Shown here one piece after another: positions 7,101-59,400 of a stretch of DNA of 64,000 nt; positions within the stretch are counted from its first letter, which is position 1; each line of letters opens with the position of its first letter. The notes under the pieces were generated by a model. The model made no database searches, was not told the origin of the DNA, and saw nothing but the letters and a program-made list of their open reading frames with translations. The stretch spans positions 20,294,341-20,358,340 of the forward strand of contig NC_083409.1 of NCBI RefSeq assembly GCF_020745735.1, given 5' to 3'. The position numbers were made by a program, and so were the translations under genes. The DNA comes from Hemiscyllium ocellatum (taxonomy: Eukaryota).

Positions 7101-7259
7101 TGACTTACTCTGATCAGTTTAGATTTGTCAGACATTTTGTCTCTAAAACTAGATTCAATCAATTCGCAACAACAGACATTCATCAGAGATGTTCATTGGG
7201 AGTGAGGTTAGTAAACAGATAGCACTGACACGAGGGGCTGAACAACCTCCTCCTGGAGT

Positions 7260-8520
7260 CATTAAGTCATAGAGATGTTCAGCACAGAAACAGACCCTTC
7301 AGTCTAACCCACCCATGCCGACCAAACATCCCACCCCAATCTTGTACACCTGCCAACACCCGGCCCATGTCCATCGAAACCCTTCCTATTCATATACCTA
7401 TCCAGATGCATTTTAAATGTTGTAATTGTACTAGCCTCCACCACCTCCTCTGGCAGCACATTTCACACTCACACCACCCTCTGCGTGAAACATTGGCCCC
7501 CTCAAGTCTCTTTTATATTTTTCCCCTCTCACCCTAAACCTATGCCCTCAAGTTTTGGACTGCCCAACCCCAGGGAAAAGACCTTATCTCTTTATCCTAT
7601 GCATGCCCCTCATACTTTTATAAACCTCTATAAGGTCACCCCTTAGCCTCTGATGCTCCAGCGAAAACAGCCCCAATCTGTTCAACTTCTACCTATAACA
7701 CAAATCCTCCAAACCTGGCAACATCCTTGTAAATCTTTTCTGAACCCTTTCAAGATTCACAACATTCTTCCGATAGGATGGAGACCGGACTTGTGCACAA
7801 TTTTCCAAAAGTGGTCTATCCAATGTCCTGTACAGCCGCAATATGACCTCCCAACTCCTACACTCAGTGCTGTGACCAATAAAGGAAAGCATACCAAATG
7901 CCTTCTTCACTATCCTATCTAACTGTGACTCCACTTTCAAGGGGCTATGAAACTGTACTCCAAGGTGTCTTTGTTCAGCAGCACTCTCTGGAACCTGGCC
8001 ATTTAGTACATACATCCTGCTAAGATTTACTTTGCTAAAATGCAGCACCTCGCATTTATCTAAATTAAACACCATCTGCCACTCTTCAGCTCATTGGACC
8101 TTTTGATCAAGAGCACATTGTTACCTGAGGAAACCTTCTTCGCTGTCCACTACACCACCAATTTTGGTGTCATCTGTAAACTTACTAACTGTATCTCCTA
8201 TGTTCACATCCAAATCATTTCTATAAGTGACGAAAAATAGTGGATTCAGCACCAACCCTTGTGGCACTCCACTGGTCACAGGCCTCCAGTCTGAAAAGCA
8301 ACCCTCCACCACCATCCGCTGTCTTCTACTTTTCAGCCAGTTCTGTATACAAATGGCTAGTTCTCCCTGTACTCCATAAGACATAACCTTGCGAACCAGT
8401 CTCCCATGTGGAACCTTGTTGAATGCCTTACTGAAGTCCACATAGATCCCGTCTAATACTCTGTCCTCATCAATCCTCTTTGTTACTTCTTCAAAAACTC
8501 AATCAAGTTTGTAAGACATG
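7260..8520 (-). mobile_element. CR1-type LINE RT and 3' end fragment
   Basis: MDFSKAFNKVPHG, GVPQGLVL, KFTDDTK, LERVQKRFTRMLPG. Confidence 0.9.
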
Positions 8521-9949
8521 ATTTTGCATGCATTAGTGGGGAATACACAGTGTACATTGTGTCCAGGAGCATCTTGAAAAGATGTCTTTCTCTGTTTCCA
8601 TTTTCAGCTCCAGGGCTGTCATGAAGGAGCTGAAAGAATCTTTGGTGAAGAAGTTTCTGGACGGTGAGGGCTGTGTGAAGGGTTTCAGCAGTGACTGATG
8701 ATTGCAGCTCCTTGTTCAGACTGCTCCTTCCCACCACTGATCAAGCCATGTAACCTCCTGTCACAATGAGTGACATTACAATCCATATCACAGTATCAGT
8801 GCCAGCAAACAGCAGTATCAAAGTCTGACCCACTGGGACAGGCATCACTGCCTGACATCAAAGAACGGAGCCTGAATCCCCTCCCCCCATGCTCATAAAC
8901 CCTACAGCATCGAAAATATACTGACACACAGCCCCTTCTATTACACACTGACCATCAGAGAGCCCCTTCAGAAGTAGAAGTCAGCATCGAGACTGAGAGA
9001 GAGGGAGAGATGGGGTGATGCAAAGACAAAGAGAGGGAAAGGGGGGGGGAGAGAGAGAGAGATGGAGAGGGAGCCAATTATTGGGAGCAAGCTGTTGTCC
9101 ATGTCTGAGGGAAGGAGTCTTATTCCAATTATGTCAGACCTTGGTGAGGCCGCACCTGCAGCACTGGGTCCAGTTTTGATTTCCTTCCCGATGGAAGGAT
9201 AGACTCACCCAGACTCTACCTGGAAGGAGTGCAGCAAAGATTCGTGAAGCTGATTCCTGACAGAAGGGGATTCTCTGATGAGGCCAAATGGAGTCTATTT
9301 GACATTATTCCCTGGGGTTTAGTGGAACAGGCTGGAGGGACTGAATGGCCTCCTGCTGTCCCTATTTCTTCTGTTCTGTTGATGGTGTCAGTGTGTGCTG
9401 ATGAGAAATGGAGTTCCTCTGTTGAAACTGCTCCTGATTTAATGATGGAGCTGGAAGCCAGGAGAAGCTTCAGAAGCTTCAATTTCTAACCAGAAACTGC
9501 CCACTCGGCCTCTTGGACACCATGAGCTGGGTTACTGTGCCTAGCACCAACATCCCCCTCCCTCCCTCCCTGACAAGGCCCTGTCTGATTGGATTCGCAT
9601 TGTTACATTTTCCCAGTTCTGGAAGGGACTCCATCCTCTGATCCAGCATCCCGGCACATTCCCAAACCTGAGATTCAAATCCGGAGTGGACCTGTTCCTC
9701 TCAAATATCAATTCCAATGATGACATTCCACTGGGTCCCTTGCTGCAGGGAAAGGATCAGCCAGGGCCATATTCTTCAGCCATGAAGAATAATGACGGGA
9801 TATTTGGAGTCTGAGTTTGATGATGTAAATGTGAACCATTGCAGCAAAGACATTACAGATGGTTTGTACAGACAGCAAAGCCCAAACCAGAGCATTGTTA
9901 CAAATGACTTTTTCCCAGTGAAGGGGTCCATCCTGCTGAGTATTCGACA

Positions 9950-17120: not shown

Positions 17121-18181
17121 GGGAGCGGTTTAAGAACAAGGATGAGAATTTGAAAATCAAGGTGTTGCTGGACCAGGAGCTGATGTCGGTCAGTGAGGAT
17201 TGTGGTGGTCATGGTGGGACGGAAGATAGGGACGGGGGTGTGGGGTGGACTTGGTGTGAGTTGGAACACCGATAGCAGAGTTTGGGATGAGCTGATATTT
17301 ACGGAAGGCAGTGGCTGTGACGTGGGCCTGGATAAAATTGTAATAGTCACATTTGGAGTCCCAAAAACATGGTTGAGATTTTCAGTGGCTGATAATTGTG
17401 ATGTGGAGGACTTGGGCCTCAAATCAGCCTCAAAGATGAGGCCAAAGTTATGAAGAGTCTGGTTGAGCAGCAGACAGTGCTCAGGGAGAGGGATGGAGTT
17501 TGTACCAGGAGCTGAAGAGGATGGCTTTGATCTTCCCAATGTGTTTGACAGTGAGCCTGGCTCCTCAATCCTGACTGCTCTTAGCTGCTGTGATTGTCAC
17601 TGATCGGACACATATTATTAGAGATTCTGACCACAGCAGAAAGCCCCAGTGTAAAAAATAAATGCAAAGACTGTCAGATCGCAAGGTTGAAACTTCACCA
17701 AGAGAGGAAGTGAAAGAAGGAGCTCGGAGCAGCTGGACGTTTGTTACTAAGACGGGAGAAAACTGTGAACCATCTGCACTCCCTGGAATCTGACAGCACA
17801 GGAGGCGGCCATTCAGCCCATCATGCCTTGGAATTACTCAATTATCCCCATTGCTCTCTCCCCATAACTCAGCAAATCTTTCCTTTATAGCTCAATCTCC
17901 AATTCCCTCTTATAGACCTCATGTCCACAGAGTGATACTGCTCTGAAGCTGGGCTTCAAATTGGCATCTCATACATTCATTGGGAGACAAACTGCCTGGG
18001 CTGGGAAATGGAGCTCAGGATCCTGAACATTCCCTCTCCCCTCCTGAGGAACACTTCACTTGGTTTTAAGTATTCACTCATGGGAAGTGTTCCCGTGTAT
18101 CTGCTGCTCTTGTTCTAAATGGACCTGGACGTGGGTTTAGAAGGGAACCAGAAGGATTGCAATTGCTGTAAATACGAGACA

Positions 18182-20955: not shown

Positions 20956-21359
20956 ATCATGGTGGGTGTGGGGCTCAGTTCCTTTCTGTTGTAATTGTGT
21001 GATGGTCCTGACCTCATCGCAGTAAAACACCTTGACCCAGAGCCTGACTGTGGAAGGGGAAGGAGAGGGGAAGGGATTGGAACATGTTGTGAATGGACAG
21101 GATGGGTCAGTGGGTCAGAGCCTGTCCTGTCCCCCTAGCTCACACTGATGGCCTGAGGATCTCCTCTCTCTGCTGGATCTTCATGGAATGAGGTTTGTGT
21201 CCAAACCAGTCCCCAGTGAGAATAGGCCAACAGCACAGAACTGTCTTCATTTAACAAGAATCTGTTCATCATCTTGAGACAGGCTAATGCCTGGTCAATG
21301 TGGGAAATGGGGCCTTACTCCAGGAGAAGACATGCTTCTGAGGTTAAGAGTTAACATCC

Positions 21360-21670
21360 ACTGTTGTGGTTCTGTTCGCCGACCTGGAAATTTATGTTGC
21401 AGACGTTTCGTCCCCTGTCTAAGTGACACCCTCAGTGCTTGGGAGCCTCCTGTGAAGCGCTTCTGTGATCTTTCCTCCGGCATTTATAGTGGTTTGTCTC
21501 TGCTGCTTCCGGTTGTCAGTTCCAGCTGTCCACTGCAGTGGCTGGTATATTGGGTCCAGGTCGATGTGCTTATTGATTGAATCTGTGGATGAGTGCCATG
21601 CCTCTAGGAATTCCCTTGCTGTTCTCTGTTTGGCTTGTCCTATAATAGTAGTGCTGTCCCAGTCAAACAT
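21360..21670 (-). mobile_element. Penelope-like element 3' fragment (GIY-YIG C-terminal tail plus hammerhead-like motif)
   Basis: FDWDSTTIIGQAKQRTAREFLEAWHS; same family as 49010-50180. Confidence 0.8.
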
Positions 21671-23190: not shown

Positions 23191-23290
23191 AAGAGGAAGT
23201 GTGAGGGGCTGACGTGGCTCTCTCTGCCTGATGCCATTTACATACTGAGGAACACCCAGTCAGATTCTCACAGGCTGCAGCTTTATAAAG
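23191..23290 (+). promoter_or_regulatory. Ig light-chain V promoter
   Basis: AAGAGGAAGT (PU.1/Ets-type) at 23191-23200, TGACGT (CRE half-site) at 23210-23215, ATTTACAT (octamer variant) at 23236-23243 and TTTATAAA at 23282-23289, all upstream of the leader ATG at 23348. Confidence 0.75.
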
Positions 23291-23347: not shown

Positions 23348-23396
23348 ATGATTTCACACATCCAGCTGATCTGGCCCCTGGCATTCTGTGTTGCAG
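23348..23396 (+). CDS. IGKV: Ig kappa (NS4/type III) leader exon
   Basis: MISHIQLIWPLAFCVA(G) followed by the donor g|gtacaa; matches my recollection of the nurse shark NS4 leader. Confidence 0.92.
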
Positions 23397-23582
23397 GTAC
23401 AAATCTCTCTCCTTCCACCTTGAATCTTTAGCTGCTCTCCATTTCACTCCAATTCCACTGACTTGTGATTGAAGAGAAAATGCTGAAACCAGATGAATGC
23501 TCAGTGTCTCCAACAATCTCTCATTTGACCGGCTCTTTCTGTGACAGTTCTGACATCACTGTGTTTCTCTCTGACCCCTCAG

Positions 23583-23912
23583 GTATCAGTGGGGACATCA
23601 GCATGACCCAGTCTCCCCCGGTGCTGTCAGTGGGACGGGGCCAGACCGCAACCATCACCTGTACGGCCAGTCAAAGCATTAGCAGCTCCCTTGCTTGGTA
23701 CCAGCAGCGAGAAGGTCAGAAACCCTCTCTCCTGATCTATGCTGCATCAACTCAATTCACAGGAGTCTCTGATCGATTCACTGGCAGTGGATCAGGGACC
23801 AGTTTCACCCTGAAAATCAGTAACGTTCAGAATGAGGATGTCGCTGACTATTACTGTATGCAGCATTACAGCTGGCCTTTCACGTTCGGTAAAGGAACCA
23901 AACTCAGACTGA
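23583..23912 (+). CDS. IGKV: Ig kappa (NS4) joined VJ exon, in frame
   Basis: Acceptor ccctcag|gt. [14 protein letters not shown]...TITC(23660)...LAWYQQ...DYYC(23855)[19 protein letters not shown]. Donor a|gtaagt at 23913. No stop codon and no RSS between V and J. Confidence 0.95.
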
Positions 23913-24273
23913 GTAAGTAAACCTCAATCCTCTGTTAGTAACCCTGTCAATACTGAAACACAATTTCTAAAACACAAATGCTGAATTGTTGAAGGTGTTC
24001 CTGAGAAGCTGCAGTGAATGAAGGAGTTGATTGAGGAGCATTGTGTCTAATAATGTGTTCAGCTGTATTTTTTTTCGTTCCATCGCCCCCTTTAAAAAGC
24101 AAGATATAAGTCAGTAAGTTTTACTCACCGTGTGGATGAGCTCTGTCCATTTGCACTCCTGCAACATGGAGTGAAATCAGTGAGTAGCCTCCTGCCAGTC
24201 TCAGTGTGACGGACACGGGCAGAGTTTGATGTGAGCTCTGGATCCCTGTCCCAGTCTCTGATCTCACTGACCT

Positions 24274-24303
<30 letters not shown>
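24274..24303. repeat. (CAG)10 microsatellite
   Basis: Direct reading. Confidence 0.95.
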
Positions 24304-24305
<2 letters not shown>

Positions 24306-24359
24306 CAGTGAGACACCGAGCTCCCACCTCCCCCAGCTTTAACTCTGCTCAATCACACA

Positions 24360-27300
24360 ATCACAGAATTGTTACAGTGCACAAGGAGGCCATTCCACCC
24401 ACCTGTCTGTACTGGTTCTCTGAATGAGCAATTCACTGAGTGTCATTCTCCTGTCTTCTCCCTGTCACCCTGCACATTGTTCCTTTTCAAATAACAGTCT
24501 CATTCCCTTCAGAATGTTTCAATTGAAGCTGCCTCCACCACACTCTCAGGCAGTGCATTCCACACCGTAACCACTCACTGGCCGAAAATATTTTTCCTCA
24601 TCTCATTTTTGTTACTTTTCCCAATTACTTTCAATCTGTGTTCTCTCGGTCTCAATCCTTTCTCAATTGGGAACATTTTCTCCATATTTATTCTGTTCAG
24701 GCCCCTTCTGATTTTGAATTCCTCGAATAAATCTCCTTCCAGCCTTCTCCAAAGAAGACAGTCCCAAATTCTCCAGTAGATCTTCATTACTGATGTTCCT
24801 CATCCCTGGAATGACCTTTGGGAATATAATTTGTTATCTATCCAAAACATTCACATGCTTCCTGAATTAGTCACATTATCTGTGTCCCTCATGATTTTAT
24901 AAATTTCTCAGCCTCCGATGTTCCGATTCATCCTCTCCCTATCGTTCAAACGCTCCAATTCCTAGCAAAATTTTTGTAAATCGTTTTCTGCACCTTTTAA
25001 AAGTTGAACAACATCCTTCCTATCACAGAATGATCAGAATTGTTCACATTATTGCCAAAGTGGCCTCACCAATCTCCTGTACAGCTGCAACATGATGTCC
25101 TAACTCCGATACTCAATACAGTGACCAATAAAGGTAAACGTTCCCAAAACCTTCTTTATCGCCCTGTCTCCCTGTGATCCAGTTTTAAGAAATAATGTAC
25201 ATTTCCCTTACCTTCACCCCTCACCCCCCCACCCCTCACCCTTCACCCCTCACCCCTCACCCCTCACCCCTCACCCCTCACCCCTCACTCTCTTTGTCCA
25301 GCAACACTCCATAAGGCCCTACCATTAACTGTATAACTCCTGCCCTGGTTTGCCTTTCCAAAGTGCAACATCTCACATTTATCTAAACTGAACTCCATTT
25401 TCCACTCCTCTGTCCATTGCCCCATCTGATCAAGGTCCCACTGTACCCTGAGATAATCTTCTTCACTATCCACTGTCCCACCAATGTTGATGTCATTTAC
25501 AAACTTTTGTTAACTCCTATATTCACAGTGAAATCATTTATTTAAATGACCAAAAGCAGTGGACCCAGCACCACTCCTTGTGGCACACAGCTATTCACAG
25601 ATCTCCAACCCTTTACCATCACACCCTCTCTCCTATCTTCAAGCCAATTTTTTTTAACCCAAATGGCTAGCTCCCTCTGGATCCCATGTGGTCTAACCTT
25701 ACTAACCATTCTATCATGTGGAACTTTGTCAAATACTTTACTGAAGTCCATACAGACAGTGTCTACTGTTCTGCCTTCATCAGTCTTCTTTGTCACCTCC
25801 TCAATCAAATCAGGGAGACACAATTTCCCATGCACAAAACCACATTGATTATCCAAATGGATGGAAATCCTGTCCCTCAGAATCCACTCCAACATCTTAC
25901 CCAGCACTGACATCATGCTCACTGGCCTATAGTTCCCTGGCTTTTCCTTATAGCCATTCTGAAATAATGGTACAACATCAGCCAACCTCTCTGGTTCTCC
26001 AACATCTTACCTGTAGCTGTCGATGATAAACATATCTCAGCAAGGGGCCCAGCAATCTCTTCCCTCGTTTCCCACAATGTTCTGGGATACACCTGATCAT
26101 GCCCTAGGGATTTATCTACCTTTATATGTTTTAAGACTTTTGCATCTCCTCATTTGTATTGTGGACTTTTTGAAAGCATCACTATTTTTTCCAAATTCCC
26201 TCGCTTTCATGTCCTTCTCCACAATAAATACTGATCTGAAATATTTTTTTCGGACCTCACCCATCTCCTGTGTCTTTCCAAAATACAGCACTCACATTTA
26301 TCTGAATTAAACTCCATCTGCCATTCCTCAGCCCACTGACCCTGTTGGTCAAGATCCCATTGTACTCTTTGACAGCCTTTTTCACTGGCCACGATGCCAG
26401 CTGAAAATTCACCTGAACGCAGTCTCACAGCTCTAGCCCCTCTCTGCCCGTTACATTGCTACTATCCCAGTTTATATACAGAAATTAAAGATCCCTTCCC
26501 CGCATTTATAACCATTTTATCATATTTGCAGGTTTCTGTAAATTCCTTGCATTTGTATTCTTCCACATCCTTCCCACTGGGTGGTGATTTATTGACTGCA
26601 TTGAGAATTCTGTGGACCTTGATGTCGCTCTCTGATATTCCCCCTGGCTCCCACAGCCCTGCCAAGTTAGTTTAAATCCTCTTCAACAGCACTAGTAGAT
26701 CCCCCCAAAGGAACTCAGTCCAAGCTCTGTTCAGGAGCAACACTGTCTGGTCTGTCCAGATGCCATCTCCCCCAGACTTACTCCCAATGTCCCAAGAATC
26801 TAAAGCCCTCCCTCCTGGACCCTGTCTCCAGCTCCACAGTAACCTGTGTTACCCTCCTGTTCGTCTTCTCACTTGCATGGGGTAATGGGGGTAATCTGAA
26901 GATTCCTACCGTTTAGCTCCTACTCCTAATTTCCTCCCGAGCTCCCTAAATTCTGACTGGAGGACCACATCCCTTTTCTCCCTCTGTCACTGGGACCGAT
27001 GTGGACCACGACTGCTGCTTGTTCCCCCTCTCCACTCAGGGTGCTCTGCAGTCGCTCAGTGACATCCTTGACCCTGGCACCAGGGAGACAACACACCATC
27101 CTGGATTCCCATCTGCAGCTGCAGAAACACCTATCGATTGCCCTCAGTCTCGAATCTCCTCTCCTCTCACTCTTCCAGTCTTCTTGTGCGCCCCCCCCCA
27201 CACCCTCTACAGCTGACCAACGCGTGCCGCCAGGGACTTAGCTCTGGCTGCACTCCCCAGATTAACTATCATTCTCATTAGGATTCTGAACTGAATCCTG

Positions 27301-27510
27301 GTTGGAGAGTGGGATGCACTCGGGGATTTCTGTGCTAACTGCCTGATTCTTTTGGACTGTCTGCTGCTCTCCCATCCCCTGTCTCCCTGCATACTCTGAA
27401 GCTGCAGAGTGACCACATCTAGAAACGTGCTCTCCAAGGAGTTCTCAGCCTCACGGATGCTCCGCACTGACACCAGCTGCTGCTCAAGCTCTGAAACCCG
27501 GAGCTCCAAC
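24360..27510 (-). mobile_element. Nested CR1-type LINE fragments in the J-C intron (3' ends, RT, ORF1)
   Basis: NYRPVSMMSVLGK, MDFSKVFDKVPH, MVCCLPGARVKDV (SGNH esterase), ELRVSELEQQL (ORF1 coiled coil). Confidence 0.85.
25214..25287. repeat. (CACCCCT)n heptamer microsatellite
   Basis: About 10 imperfect units. Confidence 0.9.
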
Positions 27511-27699
27511 TGCTGTCACTGACCACACTTCCTGTAATCATGGCATTCTAGGAGCTGGGAAGCATTCTGAAATTCCCACATGGATGCACACCCTCTCCAT
27601 TCTTTGGTTATCTCTTGGCAAAGTTCTGATAACAAACAGCTCCAGTAGGGCTCACAGTCCAGTGGGTTCAGTGTTCCAGGGTTTTGGGGAAACTTTCCA

Positions 27700-30560
27700 G
27701 AAGACTTTAAGAAATAGGAGCAGAAATCAGCCATTCAGCCCATTGAATCTGCTCTGCCATTTGATCTTGGCAGATATGCTTCTCAACCCCATTCTCCTAT
27801 CGACTCCACAGGAACTTTCGATCCCCTTTACAATCACAAATGTTTCTATCTCTGTCTTAAATACACTCAGTGATTTGCCTCCACTGCCCCCTGTAACAAT
27901 GAGTTCCACAGATTCACCACCCTCTGGCTGAAGAAATTCCTCCTCATCTCAGCTCTAATGGGTCAGCCCTTCATTCTGAGGCTGTGCCTTGGTTACCGAG
28001 TCTCTCCTGTTTTTGGAAACATCTTCTCTGCTTCCACTCTATCCAGGCCGATCAGTATTCTGTAAATTTCAATGAGATCCTTCCTCATCCTTCTAAACTC
28101 CATCGAGTACAGACCCAGGGTCCTCAACCATGGCAAGCCCTTCATCCCCAGGATCATTCTTGTAAATCCCTCCAATGCCAGCACATTGCTTCTTAGAATA
28201 TGAGTCCCAAATCTGTTCACAACATTCCAAAAGCAGTCTGACCAGAGCCTTACACAGCCTCAGCAGGACATCTCTGCTCTTGTATTCTGGTCCTATTGAA
28301 ATGAGTGCTATCATTTCATTTGCCTTCCCAAGCACAAACTGCACCTGCCTGTTAACCTTCAGAAACCCTGAAAGAGGTTTGTGCTTTAGATTTCCAAAGG
28401 CTTTCCTCATTTAGCAAACAGTCTTTGTATTTCTTTTTCCAACCAAAGTGCACACCCTCACACTGTAACACATTGTATTCTATCTGCCACTTCTTTGCCC
28501 ACTCTCCGAGCCTATCCAGCAGCTTTTACAGCCTTCCCACTTCCTCAACACTATCTGTCCCTCCACCTACCTCATGTCACCTGCAAACTTAGCAACAATG
28601 TCTTCACTTCCTTCATCCAGATTGTTCATGTATAACGTGAATAGTTACGGTCCTAACATTGACACCTGCAGAACTCTACTCGTCACCAGCGGCCATTGTT
28701 CCTCACGCTCTGCTTTATGCCAACCTGCCAGTCCTCGGTCCATGCAATACATTGCCCCTAATACTGTGGGCACTTATCTTATGTCAAATGCCTTCTGGAA
28801 ATCCAAATAGATTATTTCCTCGGACTCTCCTTTGTCTGACTGGCTCATTGCCTCCTCAAAGAATTCTAGCAGATTTGCCAGGCAGGACCTCCCCTTGATG
28901 AAGCCGTGTTGACTTAGCCCTAGTTTACCATTGCACTTCCAAGTCCTCTGCAATTTCATCCTTAAATTGAAGTCTAAAACCTTACCAATAATGGTCCAGG
29001 CTAACTGGCCTATAATTTCTCATCTTTAAACTCCCTCCCTTCTTAAACAGGGCTGTTATGGGAGCCATTTTCTATTTCCTTGCCCCCACCAAATTCCTCC
29101 CCACCCCACCTCCACACCCCGACTCCATTGATTCCTGAAGGATCATCACCAATGTCTCCACAATCTCCTCAGCGATCTCCTTCAGAACACACAGATGTAG
29201 TTTATCCAGTCTGGGTGCGTTATCCACATTCAGACCTTTCAGCTTCCCCAGTACCTCCTCCTTAGTGATGGCCACCACACTCCCCTCTGCCCCCTGACAG
29301 TCTTGAATTACTGGGACACTGCTGGTGTTTTCCATGGTGCAGACTGATGCAAAGTATCTATTCAATTCCTTTGCTATTTCTATTATTCTTTCTCCAGCCT
29401 CATTTTCCAGTGATCCAATGTCTATTTTGGCCTCCCTCTTCCTTTTTATATATCTGATAACACTCTTAAAATCTTCTTTTGTATTACTGGTGCGCTTATC
29501 CCCATATTTCACCTTCTCCATCCTTAATGCTTTTATCATTGTCCTCTACAGGTTTTTAAATACTTCCTAACCTTCTAGCTTCCCACTATTCTCCACCATG
29601 TTGTCTTCCTTTTCCTTTTATGCTGTCCTTGATCTCCCCCATCAGCCATAGTTGCCTTGTCCTCCCCTTAGTATGTTTCTTCTTTTTTGGGATGAATTCC
29701 GACTCTACTTCCTAAATTGCCCCCATAAACTCTGCTGTTTGCTGCCCCACCATCTTACCTGCTCGGTTCCCCTTCCAATTAACTCTGGCCAGCTCCTTCC
29801 TCATGTCTTTGCAGTTACCTTTACTCAACTGAAATACGGTTCCATCTGATTGCAGATTCTCCCTCTCAAACTATAGGGGGAATTCTATCGTATTATGGTC
29901 ATTTATCCACAGGGATACTTTCACCTTAAACTCACTAGTCAAGTTTGACTCATTACACATCACTGAATCCAGACCTGCCTGTTCCATCATGGCTCAACCA
30001 CAAGCTGCTCCAAAATCCATCTCATTGACATTCCATGAAATCCTTTCCTTGAGACGCGCTACCCAGTCCACCTATTCATTGAAGTCTGCCCTGACATTTT
30101 GTATACAGCTTCTCTGTCTCCTGATTGATATTCTTCCCCACCCCCTGATTACTGCTTGGAGACCTGCACATAACTTGCATCAGATTCTTTATTTCTTGTG
30201 GTTCCTCAACTCTACCCACACAGATTCTACACCTTCTGACTCTCTATCACTTCTTGCTATTGATTGAATTTTATTTCACACTAACAAGGCAACTCTTGCC
30301 CCTCTGCCCATCTACCTGTCCTTTTGATAGGATATGTACCATTGGATATTTAGTTCCTAGCCCGGATCCCCTTACAGCCATGTCTCTGTGATACCCACAA
30401 CATCGTACCCGCCAGTTTCAATCTGCACTACAAACTCAATGTGTATACTATGTGTATTAAAGTACAACACCCTCAGTCCTGCATTGACTGCCCTCCTTCC
30501 CATCATTGTCCTCTTATCTACTGTGCTTTACCTTCGACTCCTGATCCTTTCCACACTCTC
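27700..30560 (-). mobile_element. Degraded CR1-type LINE (3' end, RT, APE)
   Basis: HGFIKGRSCLANLLEFF, YLDFQKAFD, VLGKLKGLNVD...KLHLCVLKE. Confidence 0.85.
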
Positions 30561-30907
30561 TGTCCTTTTACATCTTCTGGAAACTTAAATAATCTCCATT
30601 GAGCCCTCCTCCACTTTAACTAGTTTAAATTCCTTGGAAACTCAATTTACATAGATTTGTGGCATCACTTTGTCTCCCTTACTCGGAATGCTTCGTGCAT
30701 TTAGTTACAAACTCTTTAAGTTTATTCTATTATTGATTTTCCCAGCGCTTCTTTGGTTACTTTGATTTTAACATTTCCGTCCCTACCTTTTATTTTCTGA
30801 TAACAATCAATCCCATCACTGACCAGCAATCGTACCTTCTTCTTCACCTTCCGTTTTCTCATTTTCCATCCAATTGAACCAAATTACTTTCTCTTGGGGT
30901 TACCTTC

Positions 30908-32860
30908 AGGCATGCTGGCTCAGTGGTTAACACTGCTACCTCACAGCACCAAGGACCTGGGTCCAATTCCCATCCTTGGGAAACTGTCTGTGTGGTGTTT
31001 GCAAATTCTACCTGTGTCTGTGTGGGTTTCCCCCAGGTGCTCTGGTTTACTCTCATTGTCCAAAGATGTGAATATGGAATCACAAATAATTAGAATGGAT
31101 GCCCTGGAAATATGCAGGGAAGAGGTTTTGGGAATATTGGAAAGGATGAATATAGATAAGTCTCCTGGGCCTGATGGCATTTACCCCAGGATCCTATGGG
31201 AAGCTAGGGAGGAGATAGCAGAGCCATTGGCCTGGATTTTTATGTCGTCATTGTCAACGGGAATAGTACCAGAGGACTGGAGGATAGCGAATGTGGTCCC
31301 ATTGTTCAAGAAAGGGAGTAGGGATAGCCCTAGTAACTATAGGCCAGTGAGTCTGACTTCAGTGGTGGGCAAAGTCTTAGAGAGAATGGTAAGGGATAAG
31401 ATTTATGAACATCTGGGTAGGAATAACGTGATCAGGGATAGCCAGCATGGTTTTGTGAAGGGCAGGTCGTGCCTCACAAACCTTATTGAGTTCTTTGAGA
31501 AGGTGACTAAGGAAGTGGACGAGGGTAAAGCAGTAGATGTTGTGTATATGGATTTTAGTAAGGCGTTCGATAAGGTTCCCCATGGTAGGCTAATGCTAAA
31601 ACTTCGGAGGTATGGCATTGAGGATACATTAGAGGTTTGGATTAGGAATTGGCTGGCTGGAAGGAGACAGAGGGTGGTAGTTGATGGATTGTGTTCATCT
31701 TGGAGCGCAGTTACTAGCGGTGTACCACAAGGATCTGTTTTGGGACCATTGCTTTTTGTTATCTTTATAAATGATCTAGAGGAAGGACTTGAAAGCTGGG
31801 TAAGCAAGTTTGCGGATGACACAAAGGTCGGTGGAGTTGTGGATAGTGAGGAAGGAAGTGGTAGGTTACAGCGGGATATAGATAAGTTGCAGAGCTGGGC
31901 GGAAATGTGGCAAATGGAATTCAATGTAGCTAAGTGCGAAGTCGTTCACTTTGGTAGGAATAACAAGATGATGGATTACTGGGCTAATGGTAGGCTACTT
32001 GGTAGTGTGGATGAGCAGAGGGATCTTGGTGTCTATGTACACAGATCTCTGAAAGTTGCCACCCAGGTAAATAGTGCTGTGAGGAAGGCATATGGTGTGC
32101 TGGGCTTTATTGGCAGGGGAATTGAGTTCCGGAGTCCTGAGGTCATGTTGCAGTTGTATAAGACTCTGGTGAGGCCTCATCTGGAGTATTGTGTGCAGTT
32201 TTGGTCGCCATACTATAGGAAGGATGTGGAAGCTTTAGAACAAGTGCAGAGGAGGTTTACCAGGATGTTGCCTGGAATGGTAGGAAAATCTTATGAGGAA
32301 AGGCTGAGGCACTTGGGGCTGTTCTCATTGGAGAAGAGAAGGTTTAGGGGAGATCTGATAGAAGTGTATAAGATGATTAGGGGTTTAGATAGGGTAGATA
32401 CTAAGAACCTTTTACCGCTAATGGAGTTAGGTGTTACTAGGGGACATAGCTTTAAATTAAGGGGTGGTAGGTATAGGACAGATGTTAGGGGTAGATTCTT
32501 CACACAGCGGGTTGTGAGTTCATGGAATGCCCTGCCCGTATCAGTGGTGAACTCTCCTTCTTTATGGTCATTTAAGCGGGCATTGGATAGGCATTTGGAA
32601 GTTATTGGGCTAGTATAGGTTAGGTAGGATTCGGTCGGCGCAACATCGAGGGCCGAAGGGCCTGTACTGCGCTGTATCCTTCTATGTTCTATGTTCTATG
32701 TGCAGGTCAGGTGAATTGGCCATTCTAAATTGCCTACAGTGTTAGGTGAAATAGTCAGGAGTAAATGTAGGGACTGTTTCGGTGGGCTGCTGTTTGGGGG
32801 GTTGGTGTGGACTTGTCAGGCTGAACAGCCTGTTTCCACACTGGAGGGAATCTAAGGCCA
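30908..32860 (+). mobile_element. HE1/V-SINE-like SINE split in two (30908-31070 and about 32698-32860) by a LINE
   Basis: The 5' half ends ...ccaaagatgtg and the 3' half resumes gtgcaggtcaggtgaattgg, reconstituting the junction seen intact at 49460-49485. Confidence 0.9.
31071..32700 (+). mobile_element. Young 5'-truncated CR1-type (HER1-like) LINE with an uninterrupted RT ORF
   Basis: Open frame to 32618 with NYRPVSLT, YMDFSKAFD, GVPQGS and FADD (31809-31820); (TTCTATG)3 tail; ATGTG at both junctions (31066-31070, 32698-32702). Confidence 0.95.
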
Positions 32861-33049
32861 ATATTTATCATTAATCCAACATCATTATTGCTCTTTGATC
32901 TCATTGCTTCTACTTGGATCTTGCTTTCTAGAAAGTGGCTGCCACGTTCCTGACATTGCGACAATGTAGTTTGTCAAACAAAACTGTCTGTAAATGTTTT
33001 TGGAAGACCCTGAAATGTTAAGGGCTGGATTGATGCCCATATTCCTCTA

Positions 33050-34680
33050 AACTCTTCCTATATACATATCCATGCCCTTTAAATGTTGTAATCATACCAG
33101 CCTTCACCACTTCTTCTGGCAGCTCATTTCATACATTTAACACCCTCTGAAAGAAAACATTGTCCCTTAGGTCCCTTTTAAATCTTTCCCCTGTCACCTT
33201 CAGCCTATGCCCTCCAGTTCTGGACTCCCCCAGTCTGGAGAAAAGATCTTCTCTATTCACCTTTTCTATGCTGCTCATGATTTTATAAACCTCTATACGG
33301 TCACCCAACAACCTGCAATGATCCAGGGAAAACAGCCTCAGCCCATTCAACCTCTCCCTTTTGCACAAAGCCTCCAATCTTGGCAACATCATTGTAAATC
33401 TTTTCTGAACCATTTTAAGACTCACAACATTTTTCCTCCAGCAGGGAGACCAGAATTGCACACAGTATTCCAAAAATGGCCGAACCGATGTCCTGTACAG
33501 CACAACAGCTCCCAACTCCAATATCCAATACACTGTCCAATAAAGGAAAGCATACCAAATGACTTCGTCACCCCCCTACCTACCTGCAACTCCACTTTGA
33601 GGGAAGTTTTCTTCATTTTTTTGGATGAACTGAGAGTCTTTCAGTTGTGTAAGATGCCATTCCATGGCACTATTGGATGAAGAGCAGGCAGTTCCCTCTG
33701 GTGTCCCTGATCAATATTTATCCCTCAGGCAAAATCACTAAAAATCTATTTCGCTGCTAATTGTCATACTGTGTTTGGGATCTCGCTGTGCATAGTTTGC
33801 TGGAAAGAACCATTGGGACATCCTGACTTGGACAGGTGCTACACAAATGCAAGTTTTTTTTAAGGTTGGAGTCTCCTGATCCGGGTCCTCATCCATTGCC
33901 TGCGCACTCTCACCTTCCAGGAGTTGTAGGGTCATTTGGAGCAGTGACTCTGTCTGACCCCAGGACATTGAGACTCTTCGCAGCCTCACCCTTGACCCTC
34001 AGCCCAGCAGTGTGCAGCAAGGTTTGAATTGTAATCTAGAACCTTCTACACAGACATCCCAATGTGACTCTTTCCCAAAGTGTGTGGATCCGAGTCTGCT
34101 CCAATGTTCTCGGATAAGGTTCTCCTGATCTGTGGGTGATCAGAGATTTATTAAATAGGTATCGAGCTCCATCCCACTTTCCAGCTCTTGCTCCATAGCT
34201 CTAGAGGGTTCACTGTTTCAAATGAATATCCAAGTGTTTTTTTCAATGTGATGAGTGTTTCTGCCTCTCCCACCCTTTCAGACAGTGAGTCCCACATCCA
34301 ACCAGCCTCTGGGTGAAAACAAATACCCTCAACTGCCCTCTAACCCTGCCTCCAACTGATTTCAATCTCTCCCCATGGTTATTGCCCTCTGTGCTGGTGA
34401 AAATCAGTCCTTCCTACCCACTCTGTCCAAGCCCGTCATCATTTTACACACCACGATCAAACCTCCCCTCAGTCACCTCTGTTCCAAAGAAAACACTCCC
34501 AGCCAAACCAGTCATTCCTCAAAGCTCAAAGTCCCCATTCCAGACAAACTCCTCCTCTGTCCCCATCTCTAATGGAATCACATCCTTCCTGTAATCTGGT
34601 GACCAGAACCGTACACAGTTCTCTCACTGTGCTCTAATTGGGGTTTTATACAGTTCCAGAATAAACAAACTCCTTGCTTT
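33050..34680 (-). mobile_element. CR1-type LINE 3' fragments
   Basis: FLEYCVQFWSPCWRK...MVQKRFTMMLP; a second similar segment lies at 34100-34680. Confidence 0.8.
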
Positions 34681-34704
34681 CACAGTCAACCAAAAATGAG
34701 ATAA

Positions 34705-35045
34705 GGGAGGTGATGGTCTAATGGTGATATTGCTGAGCTGTTAATCCAGAGATCCAGGTAATGTTCTGGGGACCAGGGTTAGAATCCAGCAGATGGTGGC
34801 ATTCAAATTCAATCAAGAAAATCTGCAATTTAGAGTCTAATGACGACCATGAAACCATTGTTGATTGTCACGAAAAAGCCATCTGATTCCCTAATGTCCT
34901 TTAGGGAAAGAAACTGCCATCCTTATCATGTGACCTCAAACCCACAGCAATGTGGTTGACTCTAAACTGCCCTCTGGGTGATTATGGATGGGCAATAAAT
35001 GCTGCCGATCCAGCAATTGCCCTCATCCCATCAAGGGAAAAAGAA
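34705..35045 (+). mobile_element. Second tRNA-derived SINE family
   Basis: A-box-like ggtctaatggt, B-box-like gggttagaatcc; the 3' part ends in an A-rich tail. Confidence 0.55.
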
Positions 35046-36167
35046 AAACAGTTTATCCCATGTGTCTTCTTACCACCTCACTGACCAGTATTCATTAATC
35101 ACCATGGCCACATCTTCCACCTCCACACACATTTGACTTCCAGCTTCAAACTGATGAGAGACATTTCTTCATTATCTGGGAAACAGATAGAAACATCCAA
35201 ACCTGGAGCAGCAGTAGGCCATTCGGCTCCTCAAGCCTGTTTCACCATTCAATATGATCATGGCTGATCATCCAACACAGTCCCCTGTTCCTGCTTTCTC
35301 CCCACATTCTTTGATCCCTTTAATCTGAAGAACTATATCTAATTCTTTATTGAACACATACTGCATCTAATTCCACCATGCTGGTAAAATGGATGAGAAT
35401 TATTGAGTTGTGGTTTTTTGACCAGTATGGACACAATAGGCCTTTGGGTCTTTCTGACTCTATTATATTATATTATGAATAACTGAGTACCAAAGACTGA
35501 CTCGTGTGGCAGCCTAAGTTGTAACTACCTGTCATTCAGAAAAAGACTCACTCCTTCTGTCCTGTCCGCCAATCAGTTCCCAATCCATGTCAGTACATGA
35601 CCCCAATCCTGTTGTTCATTCAGTCTAGACCTGGAAGTCCCACCCTTACTCATTGTGGGAACAGATTCTGAACAATCTCTGTCTCATCCTTCGAGGGCTC
35701 CCATTGCCTTGACACTGATTTCCAATCATGTCGCTGGTTCCAATGCACTTTTACCAAAGCACCACACAGTTTAGTAAAATGGAAACTTTTACACTTGGTC
35801 CATGGTTCTCCATTTCCATCCCTACTCTCAAGCTCACTGAGTTCTGATCACTGCCACTGAAATGCTCCCCCATTGATAGCCTTTCCAGCTGCCCACATTC
35901 ATTCTATAAACAATGATCCAAAACTGTCCCTTCTCTCTCTGCTGCTTCACCATCACCTTCTCAGGGGCAAGTAGGGATGGGTAATAAGTGTTGGCCCTGC
36001 CAGTGACACTCACATCCCAAGAAGCAACTTGAACAATGCCTGGTCGTTTGTTGGGTTTATTCTGTATTGACTACAAATATTAAAAAAGATTGAATGGCCA
36101 GTGAATATTGGGAGGTTTGAATTCCCTTTTAGTGGTAGGAATTAAAATTGTTTCTCTTGTCTTTCAG

Positions 36168-36496
36168 GCCGTGAGAACTCACAACCCAAGCTGACACTGC
36201 TGCCCCCTTCCCCGGAGCAGGTCAATGCCAAGGGCACTGCCACCCTGGTGTGCCTTGCCAATCACTTCTATCCCGATGAGCTGGAGGTGCAGTGGAAGAA
36301 GGATGGTGCAGTCATTTTGGACGGGGTTCAGACCAGCAACTACCTGCGAGCTTCGGACAGCACCTACAGTGTCAGCAGCCTGCTGACCCTCTCTGGGTCT
36401 GACTGGGAGTCCGACGCTCGCTTCTCCTGTGCCCTCACCCACGTGACCCTCCCCTCTCCCCTCAGCAAGAGCATCAGGAGATCAGAATGTGTGTAG
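36168..36496 (+). CDS. IGKC: Ig kappa (NS4) constant exon, copy 1
   Basis: Acceptor ctttcag|gc in phase with J. RENSQPKLTLLPPS...ATLVCLANHFYP...VQWKKDG...YSVSSLLTL...FSCALTH...SECV stop. Leader+VJ+C = 708 nt (235 aa). Confidence 0.96.
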
Positions 36497-36985: not shown

Positions 36986-36991
36986 AATAAA
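36986..36991 (+). terminator. Polyadenylation signal of kappa copy 1
   Basis: AATAAA followed by a GT-rich stretch; conserved in copies 2 and 3. Confidence 0.7.
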
Positions 36992-53120: not shown

Positions 53121-54293
53121 ACTCTCAGCCTAGATAATTTGCTTCAGTGATAGAATCATATAATGATGGAATCTGTACAATGTCGAAGCAGGCCATTCAC
53201 TCCAATGAGTTCACACCAATGTTTCAAAGAGCATCCCACCTAGATTCAAACCACGACACTATGCCTGTAACCCTGCATTTCCCAATGGCTCATCCACCTA
53301 GTCTGCAACTTGGTGAGTCTGAGAGGAGAGTGCTCCCCACTGAGACCAGGCTGACACCTCCCGTCCAAGAGCCTGTCTTGCTTCACCATCCCACGCCACA
53401 CTTGGAGGAATGACACCATCTGGAGATGATTCCCAGCTAGAGATAGTGCCTTCAGAAGAGAGATGGAGAACAGACGATGGGGGCAGGGGGCAGTGGGGTC
53501 TGTTGTCTCGAGGTGAGGTGTGGGACATTGAAGCAGGCGATGGCAGGTGCTGAGCCCTTTCCCCGGAAGGAGTTTGTAAGTTGATGGGTGAAAGTGGGAG
53601 GGGCACTAGAGTAACACCTTTGTTGCTGCTGAAACCCTCGCTGTCTGCTCAGTCACGTCTGAGAGACACACAGATACATCAGACACACAGGAGACAGCTT
53701 TTGTGGATGTTCACCTGGGGCAGGCCTCATCAGTCATGGAGCTATGGTCAGTAACAGTGTAAGCGGTGCGGCCCTGAAAGTCTGAGTCTGCAACTCAGCT
53801 CGGAAGGACATCAGCTCATTCGTCAAACCTGGTTCTGTCCCTCTGCAGCCTAGCCAGGCTGCCTGTGCCTTTTCACCACTCCCAGGTTTTCCCTTGTGCC
53901 ACAGCTCATTCTCCTGAGGGTCAGCTGTACTCAGGCCCGGCACATGATCTGTCCCTCTGTCAGATCCTCTTCAAGAAACTCATGGCTCACCACCGCCCTC
54001 TCCAGGATAGTTAGGGAAGGGCAATAAACAGCAGACATCAATGCCCTCCCCATCCCAGGAGTAATCAAAACAACTGATGGACAATTTAATCAATCAAACT
54101 GGTTGAAGGTGGTTAAATCATTCCAGTGATTAAATTTCACTTGGTAATTCCTGTATTAAGTTCAAGGTGAAACTTTCCTGGTCTTTGCTGAATTTAGGAG
54201 TAAAAAATGAGGTTTGCAGATGCTGGAGATCACAGCTGCAAATGTGTTGCTGGTCAAAGCACAGCAGGTTAGGCAGCATCTCAGGAATAGAGA

Positions 54294-54329
54294 ATTCGAC
54301 GTTTCGAGCATAAGCCCTTCATCAGGAAT
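54294..54329 (-). ncRNA. Minimal type I hammerhead ribozyme motif
   Basis: Exact reverse complement of the motif at 55264-55299. Confidence 0.75.
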
Positions 54330-55263
54330 AAGAGAGAGAGAGCCAAGCAGGCTGAGATAAAAGGTAGGGAGGAGGGACTAGGGGGAGGGGCGATGGAGGT
54401 TGGATAGGTGGAAGGAGGTCAAGGTGAGGGTGATAGGCCGGAGTGGGGTGGGGGCGGAGAGGTCAGGAAGAGGATTTCAGGTTAGGAGGGCGGTGCTGAG
54501 TTGAGGGAACCGACTGAGACAAGGTGGGGGGAGGGGAAATGAGGAAGCTGGAGAAATCTGAATTCATACCTTGTGGTTGGAGGGTTCCCAGGCGGAAGAT
54601 GAGGCGCTCCTCCTCCAGCCGTCGTGTAGTTGTGTTCTGCCGGTGGAGGAGTCCAAGGACCTGCATGTAAAACTTGCGCCCACACCTCCACACTCACTTC
54701 CCTCCAAGGCCCCAAGGGATCCTTCCATATCCGCCACAAGTTCACCTGTACCTCCACACACATCATCTATTGCATCCGCTGCACCCAATGTGGCCTCCTC
54801 TATATTGGTGAGACAGGCCGCTTACTTGCGGAACGCTTCAGGGAACACCTCTGGGCCGCCCGAACCAACCAACCCAATCACCCCGTGGCTCAACACTTTA
54901 ACTCCCCCTCCCACTCCACCGAGGACATGCAGGTCCTTGGACTCCTCCACCGGCAGAACACAACTACACGACGGCTGGAGGAGGAGCGCCTCATCTTCCG
55001 CCTGGGAACCCTCCAACCACAAGGTATGAATTCAGATTTCTCCAGCTTCCTCATTTCCCCTCCCCCCACCTTGTCTCAGTCGGTTCCCTCAACTCAGCAC
55101 CGCCCTCCTAACCTGCAATCCTCTTCCTGACCTCTCCGCCCCCACCCCACTCCGGCCTATCACCCTCACCTTGACCTCCTTCCACCTATCCCACCTCCAT
55201 CGCCCCTCCCCCTAGTCCCTTCTCCCTACCTTTTATCTCAGCCTGCTTGGCTCTCTCTCTCTT

Positions 55264-55299
55264 ATTCCTGATGAAGGGCTTATGCTCGAAACGTCGAAT
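55264..55299 (+). ncRNA. Minimal type I hammerhead ribozyme motif
   Basis: Stem I ATTC/GAAT, core CTGATGA, extra A, stem II GGGC-TTAT-GCTC, then GAAAC and GTC (predicted cleavage after 55295); palindromic ACGT as stem III. Confidence 0.75.
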
Positions 55300-55949
55300 T
55301 CTCTATTCCTGAGATGCTGCCTAACCTGCTGTGCTTTGACCAGCAACACATTTGCAGCTTTGCTGAATTTAGATCAATTTTCATTGTTAACTTAATACAT
55401 TTCCATCTTCATTCTTTCTCTCCAAACTGATCCCAATTTGAATGTTGCGAAAAACAAAACATTTTGTTGAAGCTTTTTGTCTTGCATACATCAGGACAAT
55501 TTACAAGAAATGTCACCGCAAAGGAAAACAATATTTAAACAGGCGTGTTCATAGTGACAACACCTCAGCCCATCAGCACTTTCCTCATATGCAATATCAA
55601 TGTCATGTTTTTCTCCTTTGATTGGTACTTTTACAATTATCCTGATGAGTGTAAAATGAAAAGCTTCCAAACACCGGGCATTTTTCAGGCCAGTTCAATA
55701 TTCTCAAATGACTATTTGATCCTAATTTGCTCTTTTGCTTCAGACCTGTTCAAATTCCATGAAGTAATTCTGTCCCATTTTGAATGGAGGACCCATTTTA
55801 CCAGCACTCACTAAATTCCAATTTCGACACCAAAATATTTTTCCTGATCTCCTTCCTGTATCTGGTGTATGACCAGAGAATGTGTCATTTTGCCTTTCTG
55901 TTTGTCGGTATTGACAGTAAATCTACATTTACTGTGTCGATTTCATAAA

Positions 55950-58900
55950 GAAGTTTTGTTACGAGAATACCCTCCCTCCCCCCTCGAGATTCTGTTCTGG
56001 TATTTCCCTGTAACCTGGATCCCCTGTCCCTGTCCCATTCTGCATTGCCCCTCAATGAAGCCCCTAATTGTCCACCATATTCCAGATGTGTCCTAACCAT
56101 TCTTCAGTACATCTGTCCTGGCCACTCTCCCTTCCATCTCCTCACTCTCAATATTCATTCCAAAGTCCCATTGCCCTTTCCCATTTCTTTTTTTCTGATT
56201 TTCTTTCCCAATTTTAAGCATTTATGTTGCTCAACATCCTTTCTTGCCCACTGCAGTACATTGTTTACAATATGAGCTACACTTCATCCTTTTAACGTTC
56301 TGGGTCATTACAACCAGGAAAGCTCTCAATAGAAAAATTCAATTAATCCCATTGCCCTGCTCTATCCCAACAGCTTTAGTGCATTTATGGTGCATATGGT
56401 GCATTCAATGACATCTGACACTTGTCTGTCTTACCCACTTACACCCACTAATGGCTTTCTCTTGAGTTCTTCCTGACAAATTGCTGTTTGTTGCAGTTTG
56501 GTGACACACTTTGGTAGCCGTTTGTTCGGTCTTTGTGTAATTCATTTTGTGCCTGATCCGTAGGGCACTCCACCTTGCAATTTAAAAATGCAGGTTCACC
56601 CATGTCATGGCCGAGGCTCCAGTCTTTCAAAGAGATGAGTTCAAGCCTCACCAGTTTAATCATTCGAATTGTACGTCATTTATTTTGATTTCTCCTGGGA
56701 TGGGGCAAGCTTTGATTTGTCTGCTATTTGTTGTCCTTCCCTAATTGTCCTGGAGAGGGCGGTGGTGAGCAATGTCATATTGAGAACATAGAACATTACA
56801 GCGCAGTACAGGCCCTTTAATCCTCGATGTTGCACCAACCTGGGGAACCAATCTAAAGCCCATCTATCCTACACTATACCATTTTCATCCAGATGTTTAT
56901 CCCGTGACCATTTAATTACCCTTAGTGTTGGCAAGTCTGCTACTGTTGCAGGCTGTGCATTCCATGCCCCTACTAGTCTCTGATTAAAGAAACTACTTTT
57001 GACATCTCTCCTATATCTATCACCCCTGAATTTAAACCTATGTCCCCTCAGCATCTGAGGAAAAAGGCTCTCACTATCCACCCTATCTAACCTTGTGATT
57101 ATCTTAATATGCCTCAATTAAGACAACTCTCAACCTTCTTCTCTCTGACAAAACAGCCACAAGTCCCTCATCCTTTCCTCATAAGGCCTTCCCTCCATGC
57201 CAGGCAACAACCTAGTATATTTCCTCTGAACCCTTAAGTTCCCACATCCTTTTTTTTAATGCGGTGACCACAACTGTATGAAATGCTCCAATTGCGGCCA
57301 CACCAGAGTTTTGTACAGCTTCAGCATGACCTCATGGCTCCTAAACCCATCTCTCTACCAATAAAAGTTAACCACCATAAGCCTTCTTAACCACCCTATC
57401 AAACTGGATTGCAACTTTCAAAGATCTGTGCACGTGGACACCGAGATCTCTCTGCTCATCTACACTACTAAGAATCTTACCATTAGCCCAGTGCTCTTTA
57501 TTCATGGTGCTCCTTCCAAAGTGAATCACCTCAACTTTTCTGCATTAAACTCTGCATTTGCCACCTCTCAGCCCAGCTCTGCAGCTTATTCATGCCTCTG
57601 TGTAACCTGCAATATCCTTCAGCACTATCCAGAACTCCACAAACCTCAGTGTCATCCGCAAATTTGCTAACCCATCTTTCGATGCCCTAATTCAGGTCAT
57701 TTATAAAAATGGCAAACAGCAGTATCCCCAAAAGAGATGCTTGCATTACACCGCTAGTAACTGAACTCCAGGATGAACATTATCCATCAACAACTACGCT
57801 CTGTCTTCTTTCAGCTAACCAACTTCTGATCCAAACCGCTAAATCACTCTTAATCCCAGTCTTGGTATTTTGTGGAGAACCTTATCCAATGCCTTACTGA
57901 AGTGCATATTCATCACATCAACCGCTTTACCCTCATGTACCTGTTTGGTCACCTTCTCAAAGAACCCAATAAGGTTTGTGAGGCCGGAGCTACCATGCCG
58001 ACTCATTCCTTTCTAGATGATTATAAATTCTATCTCTTCTAACCTTTTCCAACACTTTACCCACAACTGAAGTAAGGTTCACTGGTCTATAATTACCAGG
58101 GTTGTGTCTATTCCCCTTCTTGAACAAGGGCAGTAGACACAACCCTTGCTTTCCTCCAGTATTCTGGCACTGGATTTGTCGACAATGATGACATAAAGAT
58201 CAAAGCCAAAGCCTCGGAAATCTCCTCCCTGACTTCCCAGAGAATCCTTGCAAAAATCCCAACTGGCCCAGGGAACTTAAATATTTTCGCCCTTTCCAGA
58301 ATTGCTAACTCCTCCTCCTTAAGAGGGAAATCAGGATGGCACAAAGGTAACATGAGATAGCTTTGCGTAATTTGGCTAAGGAAAATCCAAAGGGATTTCA
58401 TAAATGCATAAAGGACAAAAGAGTAATAATTAACTGAATAGGACCCCTCAAAGATCAGCAAGGCAGTCTATGTGTGGGCAAGGAGATGGGTCAAATACTA
58501 AACAAGTACTTTGTGTCAGTGTTTACTGTGGAGAAAGACACAGCAGATAGAGAATTTGGGGAAATAGATGGTGACATATTACAAAGGAGGAAGTGAGGTA
58601 TGTCTTAAAATGCATAAAAGTAGATAACTCACTGGGACCTGATCAGGTGCACCCCAGAACTCTGTGGGAAGCTGGGGAAGTGATTGCTGAGCCACTTGCT
58701 GAAATATTTATATCATTGATGGTCACAGGTGAGGTGCTGGAAGACTGGAGTTCAGCTAATGTGGTAAGGAAAAGCCAGGAACCGGTGAGCCTGACATAGT
58801 GGGTGGAGGGAATTGTTGGAGGGAATCCTGAGGGATAGGATTTACATGTATTTGGAAAGACAAGGACTGATTCAGGATAGTCAACATGGCTTTGTATCTG

Positions 58901-59400
58901 GGAAATCATAACTCACTAACCTGATTGAGTTTTTTGAAGATGTAACAAAGACAATTGATGATGTCAGAGCAGTGGATGTGATGTATATGGACTTCAGTGA
59001 GGCATTCAACAAGTTTTCTTGCGTTGGATTGGTTTGCAAGGTTAGATCACATGGACAAACAAAGAGAACTAGCTGTTTGGATATAGAAATGGCATGAAGG
59101 TAGAAGACTGTGAGTGATGGAGGAGAGTTGCTTTTCAGACTGGAGGCCTGTGATCAGTGGTGTGCCATAAGGATCGGTGCTGGGTCCACTGCTTTTTGTC
59201 ATTGACATAAGGATTTGGATGTAAACATAGGAGGTACAGTTAGTAAGTTTGCCCATAACATCAAATTAGAGATGTAGTGAGAAGTGAAGAAGGTTACTAC
59301 AGAGCACAATGGGCGGACGAGTGGCAGATGGAGTTTACTTTAGATAAATTTGAGGTGCTGTATTTTGGAAAGTCAAATCAGGCCAGGATTTAGATGCATA
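55950..59400. mobile_element. Cluster of degraded CR1-type LINE fragments (- strand to about 58330, + strand after)
   Basis: The tail gaacatagaacattacagcgcagtacaggccc at about 56783 matches the young LINE's 3' end; RT-region ORFs on both strands. Confidence 0.8.

Follow-up and report, generated by a model that had tools for sequence, protein, structure and literature searches.

The 64,000-nucleotide stretch of the epaulette shark (Hemiscyllium ocellatum) genome analysed here, which we call the window, covers positions 20,294,341 to 20,358,340 of contig NC_083409.1 (assembly GCF_020745735.1) and carries on its plus strand a kappa light-chain gene whose V and J segments share a single exon. The gene begins with a 49-base leader exon (23348-23396, with the ATG at 23348) that encodes MISHIQLIWPLAFCVA and supplies the first base of a glycine codon; the leader residues are the same in kappa chains of Chiloscyllium punctatum, H. 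ocellatum and the nurse shark. This exon ends, as read from the sequence, ...gttgcag/gtac, and is followed by a gt...ag leader intron of 186 bases (23397-23582) with the acceptor ...cccctcag/gt. The fused VJ exon (23583-23912) is one open exon that ends in ctg a/gtaagt, a phase-1 donor. Its V part (23583-23879) extends from FR1 into CDR3, finishing ...AGCTGGCCTT, and aligns to the V segments of three split kappa genes of the brownbanded bamboo shark, C. punctatum (contigs BEZZ01006054, BEZZ01005289 and BEZZ01006767, hereafter L001 to L003). The J part (23881-23912, CACGTTCGGTAAAGGAACCAAACTCAGACTGA), which leads into the gtaagt donor, matches the J of L002 and L003, and between the two parts lies a single T (23880) unaccounted for by either flank of the bamboo-shark genes. 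A J-C intron of 12,255 bases (23913-36167) then separates the VJ exon from a phase-matched kappa C exon (36168-36496) lying 12.3 kb downstream behind the acceptor tctttcag. With the trailing A of the J segment this exon reads S-RENSQPKLTLLPPS..., and it ends in RSECV followed by a TAG stop at 36494-36496. The spliced leader, VJ and C exons specify a light chain of 235 residues. An AATAAA hexamer at 36986-36991, 490 bases after the stop, is a candidate polyadenylation signal, and no other hexamer of that type occurs in the 1.7 kb that follow the stop.

No stop, frameshift or splice defect was seen across this 13-kb gene. It has the layout of a minicluster, with one leader-V, one J and one downstream C between 23348 and 36496, all on the plus strand; no second V was found in the window, and the FGxGT motif of J segments occurs just once in its six reading frames, in the J of the fused gene. 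A scan of the whole window for the heptamer/spacer/nonamer pattern of recombination signal sequences (RSSs) returned no signal near the gene, the sole hit being a weak one at 38952. Upstream of the leader are an octamer-like ATTTACAT (23236-23243) and a TATAAA (23284-23289), and the three split C. punctatum genes carry both motifs unchanged, with the surrounding bases in agreement as well. The original prediction of a fused, in-frame VJ exon lacking an RSS is thus confirmed by direct reading and by the window-wide RSS scan, as are the intact leader, promoter and splice sites that it described and the phase-compatible C exon, to which the phase-1 donor joins at 36168. The observation of a fused VJ kappa gene is real, and lies far beyond what chance would produce.

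Further upstream, about 5.5 kb before the leader, a non-coding block at 17453-17800 (plus strand) is 95% identical over 348 bases to positions 3269-3615 of L002, where it lies about 6.4 kb upstream of the split C. punctatum V; the alignments that neighbour it are 74-83% identical. The block contains GGAAGTGAAA, an EICE-type motif, at 17706 and a CAGCTG at 17730, and is a candidate enhancer of the cluster on the grounds of its conservation and motifs. A second conserved block, at 21040-21360 and about 2 kb upstream of the leader, is 84-90% identical to L001 32-354, L002 8362-8651 and L003 900-1227.

The J-C intron is littered with retroelement debris, including two open reading frames with reverse-transcriptase (RVT_1) domains, one on the minus strand at 25545-26006 and one on the plus strand at 30894-32618 that remains open for 574 codons. 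Parts of these repeats recur at 7256-8522, 58410-60495 and 33035-33604. A (CAG)n microsatellite of about 11 units is found at 24268-24300, 350 bases after the J, and the alignment to L003 breaks there (24145 to 24233). Annotated relatives of the gene span 9.1-11.7 kb from start to stop, so that long J-C introns are usual in the group.

Two further pieces of kappa C sequence lie in the window. The first is a second C exon on the minus strand (62430-62060), opposite in orientation to that of the fused gene, with 87% DNA identity over the 930 bases around the exon. Its stop has changed from TAG to TCG, letting the frame run for 17 more codons after ...SECV; it has acquired an extra cysteine (RFCCAL), and its V would lie past the end of the window. 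The second piece, also on the minus strand (52086-51367), is an orphan fragment made up of the last 75 or so bases of a kappa C exon and its 3' flank, with the upstream part of the exon absent; its identity to the sequence that follows the C exon of the fused gene is 81-94%.

The protein encoded by the fused gene has both expected domains, a V-set (Pfam E 3.6e-19) and a C1-set (E 5.5e-22). In a first protein search the closest sequences were brownbanded bamboo-shark V genes, whose models read through the RSS after ...YP; when a second search used a length range that admitted whole light chains, the best matches were hemiscylliid 'kappa light chain-like' proteins, at 84-91% identity, and nurse-shark NS4 cDNA, at 81%. 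By these matches the gene is recognisably a shark kappa (NS4 / type III) light-chain cluster. Human and mouse kappa V regions from the PDB give gapless alignments to its V region (E about 1e-40 per domain), with all three CDRs equal in length to those of the aligned chains. The third is the nonapeptide MQHYSWPFT, set between Cys88 and FGKG, with Q at its second position and P at its seventh, equivalent to Gln90 and Pro95 of the class-1 canonical CDR-L3. By the sequence criteria for that class (nine residues, Gln, Asn or His at 90, and Pro at 95) the loop belongs to it, bearing out the prediction of a canonical nine-residue, proline-containing CDR3: its length and key residues match the commonest form of CDR-L3 in mammalian kappa chains. 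This likeness to mammalian kappa in CDR lengths, Gln90 and Pro95 is accompanied by only about 55-62% identity between the V regions, and whereas mammals make such a CDR3 somatically, in the window it is encoded pre-joined.

Comparison with the split bamboo-shark genes defines the joint closely. All three are collinear with the window on both sides of it at 84-89% identity, non-coding DNA included, so that promoter, leader, leader intron, V framework, J and the start of the J-C intron correspond in order; on the J side, the J-C introns of the split genes line up in order with window positions 23883-24808. The split clusters, however, keep a V with a 12-RSS, a spacer of 0.5-0.7 kb and a 23-RSS before the J, and the window has none of these. 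Against each split gene the window lacks a single internal piece (515, 708 or 674 bases), and that piece reaches from the V coding end to the J coding start, which is to say that it is the spacer from RSS to RSS. After the V, the split genes read CACAGTG, a spacer of 12 or 13 bases, and ACAAAAACC (TTAAAAACC in L002); before the J they read G(G/A)TTTTTGT, a 23-base spacer and CACTGTG. The V part of the window gene aligns up to 0-2 bases before the CACAGTG heptamer of L001, L002 and L003, and its J part matches the J of L002 and L003 from the fourth base after the CACTGTG heptamer. The V has thus lost 0-2 bases and the J three, at most one base is untemplated, and there is no N stretch. The T at 23880 may be an N or P base, or may reflect a species difference at the J end. 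To judge from these borders, the joint is a RAG-type coding joint, with cleavage at what would have been the heptamer borders.

We regard as very likely the explanation that best accommodates these features, namely a RAG-type germline V-J fusion within an NS4/type III minicluster that left the remainder of the cluster intact. RAG-type recombination of V to J in the germ line of an ancestor would have fused the two segments of one shark kappa minicluster; a spacer of about 0.5-0.7 kb, with its 12-RSS and 23-RSS, would have been excised, and the coding ends would have been joined with little trimming and no more than one added base, the join falling in frame by chance.

A 2015 study of kappa cluster usage in the nurse shark, published in J Immunol, reportedly found six of about 39 kappa clusters to be germline-joined. 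The source on germline-joined genes of the nurse-shark NS4 (kappa, type III) family is Lee, Fitch, Flajnik and Hsu (J Exp Med 2000; PMC2193156), who cloned six of them, R4, R7, R18, RE18, R6 and R19, from erythrocyte DNA. Joined genes were estimated to make up about 10% of some 50 NS4 genes, and a joined EcoRI band was present in all seven wild nurse sharks tested (PMC2193156). The authors inferred five or more separate joins and placed those of four genes no further back than 7, 11, 38 and 49 million years; of the six genes, four are joined in frame, and message from two (R4 and R18) is seen in pups and hardly at all in adults (PMC2193156). Few or no N bases were added at the germline joints, whereas N stretches mark the joints of somatic cDNAs, and the octamer is common to joined and split genes (PMC2193156). 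The statement in the original prediction that sharks possess germline-joined kappa (NS4) genes therefore has a published precedent from 2000 (PMC2193156), and the class of gene having been known since that year, the window gene is a further example of it in another shark lineage.

The resemblance between the window gene and the nurse-shark joined genes extends to detail. They share the light-chain family and the V-J-C minicluster plan, the leader intron is 186 bases long in the nurse-shark NS4 genes as in the window, and an octamer-type promoter is common to joined and split genes in both the nurse shark and the family of the window gene. PstI sites around the fused gene are 734 bases apart, against a predicted 727-754 for five of the six nurse-shark genes (RE18 being the exception), and a ClaI site lies just after CDR2 as in R4 and R7. 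Joints with little or no N addition characterise both, and members in frame and out of frame occur side by side among the nurse-shark joined genes and among the relatives of the window gene. There are also differences: the EcoRI fragment is 1949 bases in the window and about 2.1 kb in the nurse shark, the C region reads RENSQ...SECV rather than RDRSQ...SECA, and identity of the VJ to P0077, a nurse-shark cDNA, is only 81%; in its C region and V the window gene agrees better with hemiscylliid sharks than with the nurse shark. The kind of evidence also differs: for the nurse-shark genes, germline origin was established by Southern blots of erythrocyte DNA and in seven wild animals, and expression was shown in pups, whereas the window gene is read from a genome assembly.

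Other fused genes are found among automatic RefSeq-type gene models, with the qualification that their junctions are known from the protein models only. The nearest is P0070, an H. ocellatum 'immunoglobulin kappa light chain-like' protein whose V core is 92% identical to that of the window gene and whose C region differs by one residue over the shared stretch. It reads ...MQHSSWP-L-RSVKEP, in which RSVKEP is the J of the window gene translated one base out of frame; P0070 is thus also a fused VJ, out of frame by one base at the joint where the window gene is in frame. In a tree of V regions (89 columns) the window gene and P0070 pair with support of 95/87, the sole supported pair in the tree, the placement of P0066 being unsupported. 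In the chromosome-level annotation of C. punctatum three models, P0066, P0068 and P0073, read cleanly through from V to J, whereas in the same annotation the models of split genes (P0080 and P0083) read through RSS remnants. The V core of P0066 is 90% identical to that of the window gene, its C region differs at 3 of 108 residues, and its CDR3, MQHYSWSLT, has the same length with seven of the nine residues shared; P0073 is encoded at two loci. The models P0066 and P0073 start inside the leader intron, as does the window's own read-through reading frame, and an exact look-up of that intron-to-J frame found nothing on record. All four fused models run V straight into J as the window gene does, but with different residues in CDR1, CDR2 and J. 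Our literature search found no paper on joined kappa genes in epaulette or bamboo sharks.

Since all the other parts of its cluster are kept, the joined gene should be open to transcription and splicing like its split sisters. What remains in place includes the candidate enhancer block, the promoter with its octamer and TATA motifs, leader exon and leader intron, the splice donor of the J, the C exon and the candidate polyadenylation signal. Transcription from the V promoter in cells of the B lineage, followed by splicing of leader, VJ and C, would yield a light chain with the fixed CDR3 MQHYSWPFT, and a B cell would need no RAG activity to make this 235-residue chain. We infer that the gene is expressed. 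That its use falls mainly early in life, in line with the invariant or early-life light chain suggested in the original prediction, is an analogy with the nurse-shark precedent (PMC2193156) that might hold or fail with about equal chance.

It is also possible, though on balance doubtful, that the gene is germline-joined but transcriptionally dead or irrelevant, an unused in-frame accident heading, like its out-of-frame relatives, towards pseudogene status. One third of random joins fall in frame by chance, and the closest relative, P0070, is out of frame, but the window gene has no stop, frameshift or splice defect over its 13 kb. Its surroundings include a damaged C copy and an orphan C tail, yet its promoter does not differ from that of functional split genes, and the block upstream is conserved at 95%. 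No RNA run in a search of public data held the whole exon, the best run containing 0.52 of its sampled words; and in the nurse shark little joined-gene message is present in adults, but pups do express R4 and R18 (PMC2193156).

Alternatively, Hemiscyllium and Chiloscyllium might share an ancient lineage of pre-joined kappa genes maintained by selection, with a CDR3 of the frame MQHYSW-x-x-T, and the window gene might be one of its members, retained as an invariant light chain of innate-like character that could, for example, pair with germline-joined IgM heavy chains early in life; out-of-frame copies such as P0070 would then be its decayed duplicates. We think this unlikely. If the junctions of the window gene and of the fused gene in the other genus proved homologous, however, an old and retained invariant light chain would be suggested. 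Pre-joined antibody genes are a sign of the RAG recombinase acting on inherited DNA, and they can supply ready-made receptors with no rearrangement. With an intact kappa gene joined in frame in a shark other than the nurse shark, a close relative fused out of frame and a similar gene in a second genus, such joins could be dated, and whether selection keeps any of them as invariant light chains could be put to the test. As a single locus it is one more example, not a principle.

A further alternative concerns the joint itself: a somatic V-J rearrangement, or the clonal expansion of a B cell, in the sequenced tissue could have entered the consensus, the true germline locus being split. Somatic and germline coding joints do have the same structure, but the assembly is a consensus that represents the majority of molecules, so the joint of one B cell would not normally become fixed in it, and any given joint in a kappa cluster is present in a tiny share of cells. 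The joint moreover has none of the N stretches typical of shark somatic light-chain joints; V and J are fused as well in P0070, the nearest relative in the epaulette shark, and several models from another genus are fused too, one of them encoded at two loci. Public read data bear on the point through run X1, in which a contig agrees with the window as far as 23879 and continues as CACAGTGATA; the same or a closely related species thus has a split V whose coding end is identical. With its identical 3' end and CACAGTG heptamer, this V could be the unrearranged allele of the window locus, or else a paralogue, the relation that S10 bears to R7 in the nurse shark. The same run has a contig spliced from J to C, which covers only the J, a segment that other clusters share. 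The Logan contigs of runs X1, X2, X4 and X34 are unitigs of about 60 bases from a multi-copy family, too short to bridge 23879/23881. Given the consensus, the lack of N stretches and the fused relatives, a somatic joint is quite improbable, and the join in the window is very probably inherited. The germline-joined NS4/type III reading put forward in the original prediction is supported by the missing RSS-to-RSS piece, the retained introns, the fused relatives in annotations and the scant junctional addition; the proposed check against unjoined V and J ends for N or P additions gave at most one untemplated base.

A primordial V gene that was never split (a relic from before the RAG transposon) and a retrocopy of a rearranged mRNA would each be expected to show a fused VJ with no RSS, but both are scarcely conceivable here, the former being ruled out because both flanks, non-coding DNA included, are 84-89% identical to split genes of another genus, with the boundaries of the missing piece falling within 0-3 bases of their RSS heptamers and the window V placed among split genes in the tree, and the latter because the leader intron and the J-C intron are both retained; for the nurse-shark joined genes the same two origins were rejected by phylogeny (PMC2193156).

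Two further features lie elsewhere in the window. An open reading frame of 236 codons on the plus strand (1338-2045) encodes a rhodopsin-type seven-transmembrane domain (7tm_1, E 1e-12), and its identity to members of the extensive 'GPR139-like' family of sharks does not exceed 67%. An ATG is missing where one would be expected, and the frame falls short of the roughly 325 residues of its relatives, so that it is probably a gene fragment or pseudogene. At 54190-55362, two arms in opposite orientation match one and the same stretch of L001 (6662-7253) at 80-82% identity, an arrangement consistent with a fold-back insertion of the Penelope type.
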